NCBI GenBank assembly: GCA_973895155.1
Contig: OZ316897.1
Location: 2,681,416 to 2,745,415, forward strand
DNA from: Marsupella aquatica
Taxonomy: Eukaryota; Plantae; Marchantiophyta
Length of the DNA stretch: 64,000 bases
Direction: 5' to 3'
In this document: positions 1 through 7,499 of the stretch, one piece after another
Layout of the letters: the number at the start of each line of letters is the position of its first letter
How positions within the stretch are numbered: position 1 is the stretch's first letter
Position numbers and translations under genes: made by a program
Notes under the pieces: generated by a model
What the model was told of the DNA's origin: nothing
Databases searched by the model: none
What the model saw: the letters and a program-made list of their open reading frames with translations, nothing else

Positions 1-1512
1 GAACTTTGACGATCACTGCCTCTAGGTTGATTGGTGCTTCTATTGCAGGCATAGGGAGATGCGGGCAACTTGAAGGGGCGGCCTCGTCGATCCACTCGGG
101 GTAAAATTCCGACCACTGCAAGTGCTTGGACGCCCGCTCGAAGGGGAACACATGGTATCTGGCCCACCCAACAGTGAACTGATGCCAGTTCTGCTCTTCC
201 TCCTCATCGATGTTCACCAGCCCGATCGTCAGACCGTTCCCGTGTTTTTCCAGTTGCAGGAGCCTGAGTAGAGAAGCGCCTTTAGGCAGGTCGCAGTATG
301 TGACAGTGTTTCCCGACCCCGGGAGCTTCAGTTCCTCTAGTGACGACGCCCCTGCCCTTTTGCAACCTGGGAAAACGTTGTGTAGCGCCCTGCATCCAGA
401 AGTCCAGAAATTGGGGTAAGATTTACCACCTTGTGATCCAAACGGCAAAGAAACTTTAGTTGAGGCAAGAAATTACAAGTTTTCACCCTGCCCCCTTAAT
501 AATTTCACAAAAATTGTAATTGACAACAGTCCAAGGATTCAGTAAGAACTGATGGTCGAGCCATACAGAACTGTAATAATCTAGAAAAAGTTAATCGCAC
601 AGAATCGAGAAAGTTTCAGAGGTCCTAGCTTGCTGGTGATATTAGGTGAGCTTGTCCCGAGATAATATAAAGAGTGACCGACAAGTCGACCTGCGCGCTC
701 CAGAATTGGAGATTTCAAGATGAATATTTGTTTAAATTTTTAGAGCTCAGACGAAGTGCGTTGAGCAGATCTCCGGAGTCGGCACAAGGATTAGAGAGCT
801 GAATATTGCTATAAATTGCGACGTCAGTCGACTGGTGATCGAGAATGAAATATATACCTTGATGAGCCACTGACATATGTAGTCTGAAGAGGTCGGTCCC
901 CGTCTGAGCCCCCGGCGTCGACGGGATGGGATTCTGGGTAAGTGAGAGACAACACTGCAATGGCACACACCAGGCCAAGAAGCACGACTATCTTCTTGGG
1001 GGTCTTCGATTTTTCATACTTGTCCTCGTCACCATCGACCAGCTGGGAGTGTTCATCTGTTTGCCCCTTAGTGTAAAAGTCCTTCGCCACTTTCTTCGGT
1101 TGCAAACGCTCAAAACTGCTGAGCAGTCCTCGTCCAAGTTCTTCAGCATCTAGCTCATCCCTGTAAAGTAAACAAAAGGCGTTAAATCGCTATACTCGTT
1201 AGACCACGTCGACAGGATTCGTCCTTCTAGTACTGTCTCGTTTGTTACAAATGAAAACTCCACTAGAATTGCATATTGGTGTTATACGCGACGCGGGACT
1301 TCAGCACTTAGACAAGGCGTAGGACTTGTCCTATAACTGGAATTGAGCTAGGTTTCCTCCAAGGAGACCGTTAGTAACTTGGCATACTCGATTGTGTATT
1401 TTCGTTAGTGTGTTTGCAAGGAATTGCAGAAGTCAGTGAGTAAACTTATTTTTATTGCTTACACGAGAGATGATCCAGGCTGGCGAAATCGACCTCCCTT
1501 GCTAAGCTTCAT
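1..1512 (-). CDS. GT8 glycosyltransferase, GUX/PGSIP (xylan glucuronosyltransferase / glycogenin-like) family; 5' part, runs off the window start
   Basis: Manual splice model with matching phases: exon 1512-1463 (MKLSKGGRFRQPGSSLV), exon 1160-858 (type II TM segment IVVLLGLVCAIAVLSL), exon 389-1. The last exon encodes IGLVNID...LQWSEFYPEWIDE...CPHLP...LEAVIVKV, matching the GUX/PGSIP motif W..LYPEWIDEE...CP.LP...LD.I.VKLPC. Confidence 0.85.
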
Positions 1513-1889
1513 ATCGAATATAATTCCTCTGTATAGAAATCTCTTGAGTCAATCCTCTGGACCAATTTTTTTCGGACACCACGTCCTCTGGCCTACTTCT
1601 GCTATTAACACTGGTGGTAAGGCTCCTTCTCAAGCTCTGTTTCTAGAACTGGGGGTATGCTCAATACTGAGCTTAAACTTCTTCAACATCTGCCACTCGA
1701 GAAGCACTTCCTCGGGGAAAAACACTCCGGAAGATTGATGTAACCCATCTCGAAAACCAATGTGTCGATAGACTTCTCACCTGATTTCCCCAAAACTCTA
1801 ACTGACATGTATGAACTATGTCTTCAACCGCTAGGCCAAACACCATCGCTCTGAACCACAAGAAATGAAGTTCTGCTGACTGTCTCGGA

Positions 1890-2003
1890 TCATTCCAGAA
1901 GTTCCATATCATCAACCGCCTCTGCTATTATTGACATCGCGAGATATGCGTTAAATCCCAAGGCGCATGTAAGGACTGACAACACCCAGAGCTCGACAGC
2001 CAT
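1890..2003 (-). CDS. Micro-ORF 3 (37 aa, MAVELWVLSVLTCALGFNAYLAMSIIAEAVDDMELLE), putative uORF/microprotein
   Basis: ATG in aaataATGG context, TGA stop. Hydrophobic N-half with LWV and Cys, acidic C-terminus; more distant relative of micro-ORFs 1 and 2. Confidence 0.55.
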   Translation of the reverse strand: MAVELWVLSVLTCALGFNAYLAMSIIAEAVDDMELLE

Positions 2004-2204
2004 TATTTACCGCTTATGATACTTGAAGTGTTATCCTAAGTGCGCTTAGCTGATAGACTTCAGGAAAGCGACTGGTGAATCAATCCTATATGTCAGCTCA
2101 ATTCGGTCAAACATGCAGTCTAGAAGCTGCTAAGCTTGATCGCTGTCTGGAGCCGAATTCGTTGGTCCAGAATTGATTTCGACTCTTTCTTGTACTAGAC
2201 GTAC

Positions 2205-2321
2205 TTAGATGCATTGTTCTTCAGCCTCTGAGAACAAATCGTCAATGATTTCTTTCACCATTCCCAGAAGTAGCACACTCCCCACGCACTGAGTAAGGAT
2301 GACCCACACGGTGAACGGCAT
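2205..2321 (-). CDS. Micro-ORF 2 (38 aa, MPFTVWVILTQCVGSVLLLGMVKEIIDDLFSEAEEQCI), putative uORF/microprotein
   Basis: ATG in gaaaATGC context, TAA stop. Gapless 32-codon alignment to micro-ORF 1 with 15 identical residues. Confidence 0.7.
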   Translation of the reverse strand: MPFTVWVILTQCVGSVLLLGMVKEIIDDLFSEAEEQCI

Positions 2322-2495
2322 TTTCGGCACTCAAAATAAATCAGTGCCGATTTACGTATGGAAGCTCCGCTTGAAATATCAGTTGATCTCGTCACGAAGC
2401 GGAATCCAATGAATCTCTTCGAACAGCTCCTTGCTACCCGGTGTCACCGTTGATTTGAGAACCTGCACTTTCCGCTGAAGTCTGTGAGCTGGCTT

Positions 2496-2636
2496 CTAGA
2501 CGGACTTACAGTTGACAACAAGAGCTGGTTCCTCCTCGTCGGGAAGCACGGCATCGATCAAGTCTTTCAGCATCCCCAACACCATCACATTCCCGAAGCA
2601 CTGCAAACAGAATACCCACAAAGTCTCAATTGCCAT
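2496..2636 (-). CDS. Micro-ORF 1 (46 aa, MAIETLWVFCLQCFGNVMVLGMLKDLIDAVLPDEEEPALVVNCKSV), putative uORF/microprotein
   Basis: ATG in gattATGG context, TAG stop. Paralogous to micro-ORF 2; its N-terminus (MAIETLWV) resembles micro-ORF 3 (MAVELWV). Confidence 0.7.
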   Translation of the reverse strand: MAIETLWVFCLQCFGNVMVLGMLKDLIDAVLPDEEEPALVVNCKSV

Positions 2637-2827
2637 AATCTCTTCTATCACGAATGACTCTCTTCCTCTCTGGAGAATCGAAGTTGTCCGAGAGTCCTAG
2701 CTTTCATCAGTACTCAAGCGATCAGAAAGCTCGAGAACGTCTTTGGCAACGATCATTCACAAATCGCCAACCAAAAGTCTTCAGCCTGGTGGACTTCCTC
2801 TCGTGCCGACTGGTGGACTTGGCTCGG

Positions 2828-2835
2828 TTTATATG
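2828..2835 (-). promoter_or_regulatory. Candidate TATA box (CATATAAA) for the micro-ORF/GUX transcript
   Basis: TATAAA on the minus strand about 190 nt upstream of micro-ORF 1. Confidence 0.45.
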
Positions 2836-3274
2836 TCCTCCCCACCTCCCCACCTCTCCCCCTCACACCAAAGTACCTGAGCCTGTACTTTCCTCCCATC
2901 GATTCGGGCAGCTTATCCATCAGTCCAATTCACTCAATTCAGTGATGCCACAGAACTGTAGATCGAGTAGAGTGATCCGGAATTGGGAGCTGAGCGATTG
3001 AACTGAGCGGTGCGTTGGTCAGCTAATCTCTGGGATTAGCTGAATCAAACACATGCCTCACCGCCTGCCTTCTCTTAGTTTGCTACGGCCCAGCCGAACC
3101 TCTGGCGGCGCTCACCAAATCACCGAAGTTAACTACCTCCCGGGCTGCACGCATGCATTCATGAACGAGTGAATTGATGAATGATCGTCCTCGAGATTCA
3201 ATCATTCTGTTGAAGAGTCCCGACGCGATTTCTGCTTCACCGACATTCTGTTCCTCCGCAGTGTTTCGGTAAGC

Positions 3275-4085
3275 GGTTTGGGAGGATTCCGCTCTTGCGA
3301 CCGACGCATGGAACCCTTCCAGTTCACTTGCGAACTTGGATTTGGTGGGATCCCTTTGTAATCACTCCCTAGTGTAGTCCAGTTTTTTAAATTTGTTTTT
3401 ACAGAGGTTTATTAACCTGTCCCCAAAACAAAATTCATTATCAACTTGTCTTCCATTCTCTATATAGATTCTCATGAATAGAACCATGGTTACAAAGCTT
3501 TTGTTCTCATTGGTTAGGGCTCCCTGTTGCCATGAGGGGAGTTGCCATCTCCGCCGATTAACTCGCACCCCTCCTGCTCCCCCCTCTCTGCTGGCCGGAC
3601 GGTTTGGGAGGATTGGGCTCTTGCGACAGGCACATGGAACCCTTCCAGTCTACTGCTGAACATGGTTGGACGGCTTTGTGATCACTCAGTAATGTAGTCC
3701 AGTTTTAAAATTTCTTTCTACAACTTTTTATTAACCTCTCCCAAACTACCCAAAGTTCCTAACCGCGCACCCCAACCCCCCCCCCCCCCAAGCAAAACTA
3801 ATTATCAACTTGTCTCCCACCCATTTTCTATATGGGGTATCATGAACTGAACCATGGTTACAAAACCTTTGTGCTCATTGGTTAGGGCTTCCCTTTGCCA
3901 TGTGGCTAGGTGCCATTTCTGTGGATTCAGCCCTCCCTGGCCCCCCTTGCTGGTGGCTTGACATTTTGGGAGGATTCAGGGGCTCTTGCAACCAGCGCTT
4001 GGAACCCTCCAGTCCACTCACAAACTTGGTTGGACTACTTTGTGATCACTCAGTAATGTAGTCAAGTTTTTAAATTTTGTTTTCC
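3275..4085. repeat. Diverged tandem repeat, about 2.5 copies of a 325-365 bp unit
   Basis: Blocks GGGAGGATT...GCTCTTGC...TGGAACCCT(T)CCAGT and ATCACTC..TA(G/A)TGTAGTC..GTTTT recur near 3280, 3606 and 3968; AACCATGGTTACAAA recurs near 3482 and 3850. Confidence 0.85.
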
Positions 4086-4616: not shown

Positions 4617-6067
4617 TCAAGATCAGAGACTCTTCTCAAATCTCTGGAGTTGATATCTATCCTTGCACATTTGGCAACCTTCGGGATTCTTGGGTTAAGG
4701 GTCTTCTTATCAAGTTCACTTATTGAGGCAAGTTGAAATGTGTTCATCATTCTCGTGACTCGAGTAGCACTCCACGTCTGGTCTTTGTCGGATTGTTGCT
4801 TGGTGACTAACCTTACTAAGATCTCACAGTTTTGCAAGATTTTGGGTTTGAGGATGAGTTTAATTTCTTGTCATTCCGTACTTCATGGATGAGTCGTGAT
4901 ATCTTGTCATTCAGTACATTATGTAATTCTTTTGGGACGAGTGCACTTGGATCCCTTGGGTATGACTACTCACAAGCTGTGAGCGGCGCATTTGTTTGCA
5001 TATCCAAGTGCTCACAAGGTATAGTTTGGAGGTCTTGTTTGGCCCTAATGTGGCGAAGTTGACTTCAACCGAAAGTGCACTTTTTATTGATCTTCCTGCA
5101 AGTATGGTAAGAATCTGCCTATTTTCTTTGACAGTCAACCATGCCCAGTCTTCGGAGTTTTTTATGCTTATAGAAATGCTCTCTCAAGCTGATGTGTGTG
5201 CACTGCGGTGGGAATGCAGCTTGGTTCATTCTTTATGGTCTGGGTTTAGTTGGCTTTGTCTTCAAGAAGGACATTGCAATGTTTTCAGAACACTTGGCTG
5301 TTGGGCTCTCTGCTGGTCTCATGGGGAGCATCACAACTTACGCTGTCCATGATGCAATGAAATTTGGCAATCATGGTGACTGGCAGTTGACTTATTTGGT
5401 CTACTAATTGGTGCGTATCTCTGCTCTATTGTCAGTTTCGTTCCAAGATAACTCGAAATGGAGCATGAGGATGCTGTTGCAAGCCTGAGGAAGTCATTTC
5501 CAGGTCCCGAAGAGTACTACGAATAATTAGCAATTGATGCTAACAAATCAAGTAGAATCTGGAACACAGTTTGGTTTAATTCGAGCTATATATGATGATA
5601 TGTACGTTTTACACTTGCTGAAAGTGGTGGTCTGGCATCTGACAGGAATATACTTGGCCCAAATGTCTCTCGTGGTGGGAGAGGACACGGCACGCCTTTT
5701 GCACAGAACAATTCAATTTATAAAGGATGAGAGGAGTTGCAAAGGGTTAGAAAAGTGGCATGTGTCTGCACCTAACAATCTCAATCGTTGAAATTTGAGC
5801 CTCGCCCTGTTCATATTTCTCGGTGGTGGCTTATGGGTAGCATCAGTGGTTCTGACACTGATCGATACAAACTCAACATCGAGAACAACTCTTTGGCTAG
5901 CTTGTTGGCTTGCTCCACCAGGAGTATGGTTTCGATGGTATTTTGCTCATTTGAATGGACATGGCATCGGACCAAAGCACCACCAGAAGTGGTTTCCTGT
6001 GGGAACATTCTTGGTTAACGTGACAGCTTCTTCCCTTAAAGCTGGTCTGACATCTGTCGATTCTGCT
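4617..6067 (+). pseudogene. FEX: Fluoride exporter (FEX / CrcB-Fluc family) pseudogene
   Basis: Exon remnants ISILAHLATFGILG, VLTRYSLEVLFGP...DLPASM, LAVGLSAGLMGSITTY and LWLACWLAPPGVWFRWYFAHLNG...WFPVGTFLVNV. Disabled by frameshifts in the 5220-5410 exon, an in-frame TGA at 5789-5791 and non-canonical splice sites; no last exon found. Confidence 0.85.
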
Positions 6068-7499
6068 GTAAGTTCTTTCTGTCTCGCTCTGAGCTGTGTG
6101 CTCGCTCTCTGTGTTCAAAGCCAATGTGTACCAATGAGTTTAGTATCTTTTGGAATACTATTGCACGTTGTGTCTGTAGTAACCTTTGCAGATATTAGTT
6201 GCTCACGGTATTGAAATGCTCAAATGAAGCTGGGGACGGAAGGTCTGATACCGAAATAGGGTGCTCCCATAAGGAAAAATGAAACAAACATATCTCTCCC
6301 TCAACAAATTTATGACATTTCCCTGACGTATGTTTCGTCAAACGTAGGTCGGGAAGTATACTTCCACAGTGGTTGTGGGCGGTAGTAACCTAAGAGACGC
6401 TCGGGGGCTTGAGCACTGTTTTGACCTTCGTTACCGAGATACAGCAGATAGTGCACGAGGGGAGCAATCGGTGGCGATCGTATGCTTACCCAATCATCTC
6501 ATTGGCCGTTTCCCTCGTTATTGGAATTCTAATATACGGAGTCCCGGTGTGGTCAAAGGCTGTGTGAATGTGGGCATGTGCAAATCGGGCGTTGCCTGGA
6601 GTCTTTGAATTGGAACTCAGAAAGTGCCTACCTCCTCTTCTTCACAAGTTTAACAATTTGCAAAGATTTTATAAATGTTCTCTTGCATTTAGCCTGTTGG
6701 TAAGTCTTTTGAACACTGGACAAGTCATATTTGATTTGCTAAAAAAAGTGCTTAATAGGACTCATCAAATGAATCTAAAGGTCAGATTAGGTTTATAGAT
6801 CGATAACACATTTTCTATAGCATATCTTGGGCTGGGGGCACTACACAAAATTGCATATAATTAGTTGTCCTAAAAGAGCCCCTGAAGGAAGTGTGACTGA
6901 TTTGTGGGAGTAAGTGTTATTTTGATCCCTTTGGAATCATTAGTGTATTATTAGAACCGGGTGTGTAGAAATGCATGTTATTTTTAATCTTGTCAAGCTA
7001 ATAATTATAATCAAAAATTAAAATACACTAAAGGCATTCAAAAATCTAAATTTGGTAAAAGCATTGTTTTTAATATTCAGCTAGGTATTTAAAATTATAT
7101 AATATAGGGCACAAGTTTTTTTTAATTAAGTTTATTGGTTTTTTTCACATATTTTAGGTGTTTGCACTAAGTCATTCCCCATGGATTTGATATTTTGCTC
7201 AAAATTTAAATGCACACAAAGGCCCAAAAATAAATTTATGATGAATAAAAAATGGGGAAAAATCAAATACTCTTTAGGCCAACACTAAAAAATTGATTAT
7301 TGGCTCTCAAGTCAAGTGAGGTCATTCAAATGGCTGTAGGGTGCTTTAGGTACAAGAGTTGTTAAGTATTTTCTTTGCATACCTCAAGACCAAGAAGTTT
7401 TTGCTCAAAAATCACTAGTAAGTGCATGAATGAAACACATAATGTGTCATAAATTGATATGTATCACAATAAGTTCTGCACGCATAAAAATATTAATCT

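Follow-up and report, generated by a model that had tools for sequence, protein, structure and literature searches.

Three conserved tandem micro-ORFs upstream of a GUX-like gene in Marsupella aquatica: a candidate family of plant microproteins

Introduction

Can unannotated open reading frames (ORFs) of fewer than 50 codons be genes in their own right, and how would several of them in series be translated in a land plant? The question is raised by a locus of Marsupella aquatica (Marchantiophyta) at which three minus-strand micro-ORFs, here named o1, o2 and o3, follow one another upstream of a gene resembling GUX glycosyltransferases. The locus lies in a 64-kb stretch of contig OZ316897.1 that was analysed as a whole (the window); coordinates are window positions unless marked L001, which is a contig from a relative. 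A previous inspection of the letters without database searches (the sequence-only reading) had proposed that the three ORFs descend from old duplications and that purifying selection acts on their peptides, which it took for single-pass membrane microproteins or conserved peptide uORFs. To our knowledge, there is evidence of function beyond translation for very few plant micro-ORFs.

Results

The ORFs start at 2636, 2321 and 2003, encode 46, 38 and 37 aa and are spaced by 315 and 318 nt, exactly as the sequence-only reading had given them, and all three carry the A at -3 that it had noted (ATT-ATG-G in o1, AAA-ATG-C in o2, ATA-ATG-G in o3; Table 1). The alignment of o1 with o2 was also reproduced: it is gapless over 32 codons with 15 identities, or 16 identities in 36 columns if Met1 is included, and seven of the identical residues are encoded by different codons. 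This similarity is beyond chance. With every stop-to-stop segment in the six frames of the whole window as background, phmmer gave E 3.5e-8, and the next match had E 0.2. Identity between the two ORFs is 58/83/47% by codon position, with a nonsynonymous divergence (dN) of 0.37 and a synonymous divergence (dS) of ~1.6, which is saturated. Repeat finders and DNA alignment detected no similarity between the two spacers, in agreement with the earlier impression. Judged by their sequences, o1 and o2 are clear paralogues.

The proposed kinship of o3 stood in part. Like o1 and o2, it has MA-x-E-LWV within the first ~10 residues, Cys13, a hydrophobic run and an acidic tail, and it matches them in length and in the ~315-nt register, but the statistics are marginal: phmmer gave E 1.5 for o3 against o2 and E 5.9 for a profile of o1 and o2 against o3, and hhalign with orthologues added aligned o3 over the first 10 columns alone (P 0.042). 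We regard o3 as a plausible, though unproven, old paralogue of the other two. A profile of the three peptides found no further copies in any of the six frames of the window.

Table 1. Coordinates of the micro-ORFs, their counterparts in L001, neighbouring features and BLASTN islands between the window and L001
Feature	Position	Strand	Description
o1	2496..2636	(-)	46 codons; MAIETLWVFCLQCFGNVMVLGMLKDLIDAVLP followed by a variable acidic tail; first 32 codons are the conserved core
o2	2205..2321	(-)	38 codons; MPFTVWVILTQCVGSVLLLGMVKEIIDDLF followed by an acidic tail; o1 paralogue
o3	1890..2003	(-)	37 codons; MAVELWVLSVLTCALGFNAYLAMSIIAEAVDDMELLE; built as o1 and o2, possibly a distant paralogue
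Spacer 1	2322..2495	(-)	o1 stop to o2 ATG; 174 nt; no ATG; not alignable with L001
Spacer 2	2004..2204	(-)	o2 stop to o3 ATG; 201 nt; one ATG; not alignable with L001
Candidate fourth ORF	1831..1893	(-)	20 codons; MIRDSQQNFISCGSERWCLA; ATG overlaps the o3 stop (AUGA; GAATGA)
Putative core promoter	2802..2833	(-)	TATAAA (2833-2828) and block GCCAAGTCCACCAGTCGGCACG (2823-2802)
Candidate cis-element	3010..3027	(-)	18-mer ATTAGCTGACCAACGCAC, ~180 nt upstream of the TATA box; identical at L001 1163-1180
GUX-like exon 1	1463..1512	(-)	ATG 1512; MKLSKGGRFRQPGSSL(V); GT donor (GTAAGC) at 1462, phase 2
GUX-like exon 2	858..1160	(-)	Cytosolic stretch and membrane anchor IVVLLGLVCAIAVLSL; opens in phase 2; no in-frame ATG
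GUX-like exon 3	1..390	(-)	FYPEWIDE...CP..P.P; continues past the window start
o1 orthologue	L001 1607-1720	(+)	37 aa; ATG 1607
o2 orthologue	L001 1995-2108	(+)	37 aa; ATG 1995
o3 orthologue	L001 2255-2368	(+)	37 aa; ATG 2255; 33/37 residues identical, equal length, same stop position
BLASTN island, o1	2636-2551		88%; begins exactly at the ATG
BLASTN island, o2	2326-2233		88%
BLASTN island, o3	2003-1873		84%
BLASTN island, GUX exon 1 donor	1495-1453		86%
BLASTN island, GUX exon 2	1172-853		74%
BLASTN island, GUX exon 3	401-3		79%
BLASTN island, upstream element	3027-2997		87%

We queried the three peptides against 5.8 billion proteins, and an exhaustive search covered 1.84 billion representatives. 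The larger set returned a single protein, P0001 (called at 45 aa), which is orthologous to o2 and agrees with it at 28 of the 30 N-terminal residues; through the exhaustive search we obtained P0002 (40 aa), an orthologue of o1 with 25 matches in the first 32 residues. Both are encoded in tandem on one metagenome contig of 1741 nt from the Joint Genome Institute (JGI), the ATG of P0002 lying 294 nt upstream of that of P0001. A further 40-aa ORF is called on that strand of this contig, at 3-125. It lies 744 nt upstream of the o1 orthologue, reaches the contig end and may be unrelated or another member of the family. Another candidate, P0003, was discarded, as its match was a low-complexity repeat, and metagenome scans with the o1/o2 profile and with an o3 profile gave no additional relatives.

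A second line of relatives came from the downstream gene, whose exons were searched singly and not as a joined GUX model. GUX exon 2 as a separate query led to P0004, which was found on four Logan genomic contigs that hardly differ from one another (L001-L004). One of them, L001 (4220 nt), represents this locus in a diverged relative and carries o1, o2 and o3 in this order, followed by the GUX exons. The absence of the ORFs from the orthologous locus, which would have spoken against the sequence-only reading, was thus not observed: all three are intact in L001 and o1 and o2 are intact on the metagenome contig. No family matching the peptides was found in Pfam, PDB sequences, the ESM Atlas or Rfam, and the protein sets gave only P0001 and P0002, which agrees with the earlier reading, in which the peptides were not recognised as any described family. 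We regard o1-o3 as a candidate new family of a known kind of gene, in an arrangement that is unusual for a land plant.

BLASTN between the window and L001 detected isolated islands only (Table 1). In segment-wise global alignments scored against shuffled controls, the ORFs reached z values of 33-46, the leader ahead of o1 and the interval from o3 to the GUX start only 7-10, and the two spacers, like both GUX introns, ~0. In alignments of the flanks, similarity sets in within a few bases of each ATG. A plain DNA repeat, with equal similarity across the spacers, would look different, since the spacers are unalignable between the two species.

Within the ORFs, the substitutions show the pattern of coding sequence under constraint (Table 2). 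The ratio dN/dS (omega), which the sequence-only reading had expected to lie away from 1, was 0.09-0.12 for each ORF core and 0.097 for the cores pooled (binomial P against neutrality 1.5e-9). Purifying selection on the peptide sequence, as proposed, is thereby supported, and it indirectly favours translation of every ORF. Values of dN are 2.5-3 times lower in the micro-ORFs than in the GUX exons, and the dS of GUX exon 3 equals that of the micro-ORFs, which argues for a tighter amino-acid constraint on the micro-ORFs than on the N-terminal part of the enzyme.

Table 2. Nei-Gojobori estimates, window versus L001 (pooled cores: o1 core, o2 core and whole o3)
Region	omega	dN	dS	Differences at codon positions 1/2/3
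o1 core	0.088	0.071	0.81	2/3/10
o2 core	0.121	0.059	0.49	4/1/6
o3	0.087	0.054	0.62	2/0/13
Cores pooled	0.097	0.061	0.63	8/4/29
GUX exon 2	0.125	0.20	1.6 (noisy)	21/14/48
GUX exon 3	0.231	0.155	0.67	22/12/47

Conservation covers residues 1-32 of o1, residues 1-30 of o2 and the whole length of o3. The last 5-14 residues of o1 and o2 vary in sequence and length across three lineages, yet remain acidic. Invariant in the six o1/o2 sequences are M1, W7, Q12, C13, G15, V17, L20, G21, M22, K24 and D28. Contigs of a close relative (organism B) provide weak evidence in the same direction: they show no differences in o2, o3 and the covered part of o1 (2496-2606), six in spacer 1 and, depending on the run, 3-13 downstream of o3. 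Two local changes were seen in these contigs, namely the replacement of 44 nt of GUX intron 2 by TATC (649-694) and, downstream of o3, six substitutions within 17 nt (1800-1816) in one organism-B sample; the two organism-B samples differ from each other there.

Short islands of conservation in non-coding surroundings would also be left by conserved non-coding elements whose frames are open by chance (enhancers, RNA structures or small-RNA precursors), and part of o1 (2540-2595, minus strand) has a sub-threshold match to the Rfam family SNORD123 (22 bits against a gathering threshold of 45; E 0.91). Such elements would not account for substitutions falling mainly on third positions (2/0/13 in o3, 8/4/29 pooled), for the retention of ATGs and stops or for an omega of ~0.1. 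No Rfam family matched at threshold, and we take the SNORD123 match to be a chance match. This explanation is strongly disfavoured and receives next to no weight from us. Based on the sequence comparisons, o1-o3 are almost certainly real, unannotated ORFs under strong purifying selection.

How such ORFs could be expressed is suggested by the sequence around them. Upstream of o1, a TATA box and an adjoining block (Table 1) have counterparts in L001, where TATATAG lies at 1388 and the block at 1400 amid otherwise weakly similar sequence. The 18-mer further upstream is a candidate promoter element, with an ACCAAC core that we presume to be reminiscent of MYB-type sites. The position of the conserved TATA region would place the beginning of the transcript near 2800, ~165-190 nt ahead of o1. 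The spacers hold no conserved element comparable to this putative promoter region.

The sequences that would be scanned between these ORFs are depleted of ATGs. In L001, none is present in the leader (189 nt; 3.6 expected), spacer 1 (274 nt; 5.5 expected) or spacer 2 (146 nt; 2.4 expected), and the first ATG after the putative transcript start is that of o1. In the window, 3.1 were expected in spacer 1 and 3.4 in spacer 2, with none and one observed. Over the five segments combined (984 nt), one ATG stands against 17.9 expected, and none of 20,000 shuffles had as few. The depletion fits one transcript that is translated ORF by ORF via reinitiation. Leaky scanning is unlikely because o1-o3 carry internal ATGs in good context. 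From this layout, we consider that o1-o3 probably share one transcript.

Alternatively, o1-o3 might be three separate monocistronic mini-genes, with a promoter and a poly(A) site for every ORF within a unit of ~315 nt. Every ORF has an ATG in usable context and is conserved as an independent unit, as would be expected of such genes. However, the 146-274 nt from stop to ATG do not leave enough room to fit a 3' end together with a promoter and a leader; unlike the region upstream of o1, the spacers contain no block conserved between the species; and the ATG depletion of the spacers would be left without a reason. We therefore rate separate mini-genes as improbable.

The micro-ORFs are followed on the same strand by a multi-exon gene (Table 1). 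Exon 1, with its ATG at 1512, is the phase-compatible candidate with a good donor that lies closest to the acceptor at 1160. In L001, exon 1 has its ATG at 2684, encodes MLKLSKGGNPRTVEARFRQPGSSL(V) and has the same donor phase. Exon 2 shares 74% nucleotide identity and 67 of 96 aa with its orthologue (P0004 in L001). We take FYPEWIDE, CP..P.P and RDVGRLH (the last in the relative) to be N-terminal motifs of GUX/PGSIP glycosyltransferases of family GT8; Pfam gave no match for the N-terminal GUX-like exons, the GT8 domain lying beyond the window start and the end of L001 and the N-terminal region having no Pfam coverage. The conserved GUX start at 1512, 378 nt past the o3 stop, places the micro-ORFs upstream of the GUX coding region.

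In the window, o1 and o2 terminate close to donor-like sequences (GTAAGT at 2509, GTACGT at 2199), which raises the question of whether a larger spliced gene uses the ORFs as exons or as alternative first exons, for instance by joining o1 to GUX via GTCCGT at 2505 or o1 to o2; this 2505 site, in phase 2, would put o1 in frame with exon 2 at 1160. We examined splicing of o1 to GUX exon 2 (2505), an exon starting at ATG 2920 with a CAG-GTAC donor, and a fusion of o1 with o2, and none of these models is conserved in L001. We reject the exon readings because the donor-like sequences of o1 and o2, like their phases, are not conserved there. Moreover, conservation runs from each ATG to near each stop, the stop position of o3 is shared, and GUX has another first coding exon (ATG 1512) that is conserved and in the right phase. 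That o1-o3 are exons is thus very improbable.

The position of the ORFs is also that of conserved peptide upstream ORFs (CPuORFs). In this explanation, o1-o3 would lie in a GUX 5' leader of ~1.3 kb and tune GUX translation in cis, through peptide-dependent stalling or through the mere consumption of scanning ribosomes, their peptides being functionless themselves. They share the strand of the conserved GUX ATG and precede it, this synteny is kept in L001, and the sole conserved TATA-type promoter that we saw is the one upstream of o1. The stretch from the o3 stop to the GUX ATG is somewhat depleted of ATGs (four observed, 7.8 expected over 377 nt in the window; two observed, 6.5 expected over 315 nt in L001), and its small ORFs all end before the GUX ATG. 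Amino-acid conservation with a dN/dS well below 1 is likewise what is looked for in CPuORFs.

Several observations count against this role. Typical arrest peptides, such as those of SAMDC- and bZIP11-type CPuORFs, are conserved near the stop. In o1 and o2 the opposite is found, the N-terminal 30-32 residues being conserved and the stop-proximal residues variable, which argues against typical arrest-type uORF peptides. Between o3 and GUX there are 2-5 further ATGs, compared with 0-1 in the inter-ORF spacers, and neither species has an ATG in the final ~177 nt ahead of the GUX ATG, as would fit a start site of GUX's own in that stretch. A ribosome sink would not require three hydrophobic, paralogous helices whose dN is below that of the enzyme exons. 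Furthermore, uORFs of more than ~35 codons reportedly trigger nonsense-mediated decay in plants. A CPuORF function of o1-o3 thus appears rather unlikely. That GUX is also on the o1-o3 transcript is possible, and on the sequence layout we lean slightly against it; in the simplest reading, GUX would either have its own start site downstream of o3 or be a poorly translated last cistron.

Using an alignment of six sequences, AlphaFold2 predicted a single helix for residues 2-30, with predicted local distance difference test (pLDDT) values of 80-85, and disorder in the tail. On the Kyte-Doolittle scale, the best 19-residue segments average 1.45-1.98, around the classical mark of 1.6, and the net charges are -4 to -6. 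The presence of polar and small residues in a helix of marginal hydrophobicity suggests that it packs against a helix of a partner. A complex prediction for o1, o2 and o3 together scored 0.09, which gives no verdict for or against binding. We also considered secreted peptides composed of a signal peptide and a short mature peptide and rejected this possibility, because conservation is found in the hydrophobic part and variation in the tail. Going by these models, a trans-acting role of the peptides as membrane helices is fairly likely.

Other features were noted around the array. The ATG of a short ORF overlaps the o3 stop, and this overlap is kept in L001, in which the counterpart (L001 2365-2433, plus strand) has 22 codons and encodes MMGGRHQFIFVGGAVTRIQWLA. 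Its similarity to MIRDSQQNFISCGSERWCLA is weak, the common residues being M..Q.FI..G...W.LA*. The ORF may be a fourth, termination-coupled micro-ORF or may reflect mere residual DNA similarity. Three units of 320-364 nt, 64-85% alike, follow one another in tandem at 3274-4077, in the interval that separates the putative micro-ORF promoter from the next gene; parts of these units recruit many partial high-depth contigs in all four sequencing runs with the locus, which assigns them to a dispersed repeat. Beyond it, at ~5000-6200 on the plus strand, lies a divergent multi-exon gene. An exon fragment of this gene matched the CrcB/fluoride exporter family PF02537 at E 7.6e-5, which for this fragment is below the curated cut-off.

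Discussion

In this study we identify three micro-ORFs whose conservation between species is confined to the ORFs themselves. The explanation that we favour, and hold to be a little likelier right than wrong, is that o1-o3 are real coding micro-genes on one RNA, translated by serial reinitiation, and that their products are small trans-acting membrane helices. In the first step, a single capped RNA carrying o1-o3 would start at the conserved TATA promoter, ~165-190 nt upstream of o1. Termination and reinitiation would then occur in series, the ATG-free spacers of ~150-270 nt letting the 40S subunit reach the next start. Each product, of 37-46 residues, would consist of a short N-terminus, one hydrophobic helix of ~20-30 residues in which W, Q/C and G positions are conserved, and a C-terminal tail that is disordered and strongly acidic. 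In the last step, the membrane-embedded helices would act in trans, probably by packing among themselves or onto a larger membrane protein.

A number of observations weigh against this explanation. The family was found in just three or four closely related lineages, and a search of sequencing runs recovered four runs with the locus, all of them DNA-like, and no RNA run; the holes in X2 are sampling artefacts, as 91% of the index words are present in X2. The window has weak-context ATGs at 2756 and 2707 ahead of o1 and at 2114 in spacer 2; the last opens an ORF of 22 codons that terminates before o3. The hydrophobic segments include Q, N and G, and basic residues, those flanking the helix included, are scarce (one Lys each in o1 and o2, none in o3). 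Polar residues in the helix and the lack of a basic residue in o3 make membrane insertion plausible rather than certain. Reinitiation past ORFs of 37-46 codons is, moreover, usually inefficient. Its efficiency after such ORFs is discussed in PMC11291117.

A bolder version of the favoured explanation would be an obligately tricistronic nuclear RNA, or a tetracistronic one with GUX, that supplies three paralogous membrane microproteins in fixed proportion, through serial reinitiation over the ATG-free spacers, and these would assemble with each other or with the neighbouring type-II Golgi glycosyltransferase. We consider this unlikely. If true, it would be a plant counterpart of the insect tal and sarcolamban loci and would represent a new layer of small subunits for cell-wall glycosyltransferases.

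The findings matter in several respects. Three unannotated ORFs of fewer than 50 codons that have an omega of ~0.1 and change more slowly in amino-acid sequence than the adjacent enzyme provide a testable candidate microprotein family. The locus may also exemplify, in a land plant, how a eukaryote translates several ORFs of one RNA by reinitiation, its spacers being kept nearly ATG-free in two species. Such genes are easily missed: among 5.8 billion public proteins, the relatives amount to two ORF calls on one metagenome contig. Should the peptides work with or control the adjacent GUX-like glycosyltransferase, this would bear on xylan glucuronosylation, or on that of the glycosyl inositol phosphorylceramide (GIPC) type, in early land plants.

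By sequence, o1-o3 belong to none of the families with which we compared them. The sarcolamban locus of insects consists of two tandem paralogous small ORFs (smORFs) on one 'non-coding' RNA, and its products are single-helix membrane micropeptides of ~30 aa that bind a larger membrane protein. Sarcolamban A and B and the sarcolipin/phospholamban regulins are among the micropeptides named in PMC11475943 and PMC8435553. In place of the regulin motifs, o1-o3 have acidic C-terminal tails and a conserved QC/G core, and their membrane insertion is predicted. No regulin-like similarity was found in PDB sequences, Pfam or the ESM Atlas.

The arthropod peptides of tarsal-less, polished rice and mille-pattes (tal/pri/mlpt; Kondo 2007 and Savard 2006, as cited in PMC12744755; also PMC10635573) are soluble animal peptides of 11-32 aa with an LDPTGXY motif. 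Their genes likewise string paralogous micro-ORFs together in tandem; every ORF has separate start and stop codons, and conservation is confined to the ORFs. The tal/pri RNA was once taken for non-coding; a single RNA for o1-o3 is what we infer. There is no sequence similarity to tal/pri, and o1-o3 are plant sequences encoding hydrophobic helices of 37-46 aa with acidic tails. The tandem paralogous smORFs by which loci of the tal/pri or sarcolamban (Scl) type are recognized are present here as o1 and o2, given the E value of 3.5e-8 between them.

In plants, CPuORFs (PMC9305500) are likewise short same-strand ORFs upstream of a main ORF that are conserved at the peptide level. In contrast to these, o1-o3 occur three in series, at 378 nt from the main ATG with further ATGs between, and their stop-proximal residues are not conserved. 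Bicistronic mRNAs of the CDC26-TTM3 type resemble the locus in that the ORF of a functional small protein lies upstream of an enzyme ORF and the spacers are short and poor in ATGs; there, according to PMC11291117 and papers that it cites, both ORFs are on one mRNA, leaky scanning is the route to the second, and the upstream ORFs are without strong or internal AUGs. The internal AUGs in good context in o1-o3 make reinitiation likelier than leaky scanning of this type. In a limited literature search, we found neither such a plant locus described nor uORFs or a CPuORF family for GUX genes. Taking these comparisons together, the polycistronic smORF RNAs of insects would be closest to o1-o3 in their working, and CPuORFs and the bicistronic mRNAs of plants and green algae would be their closest likenesses among plants.

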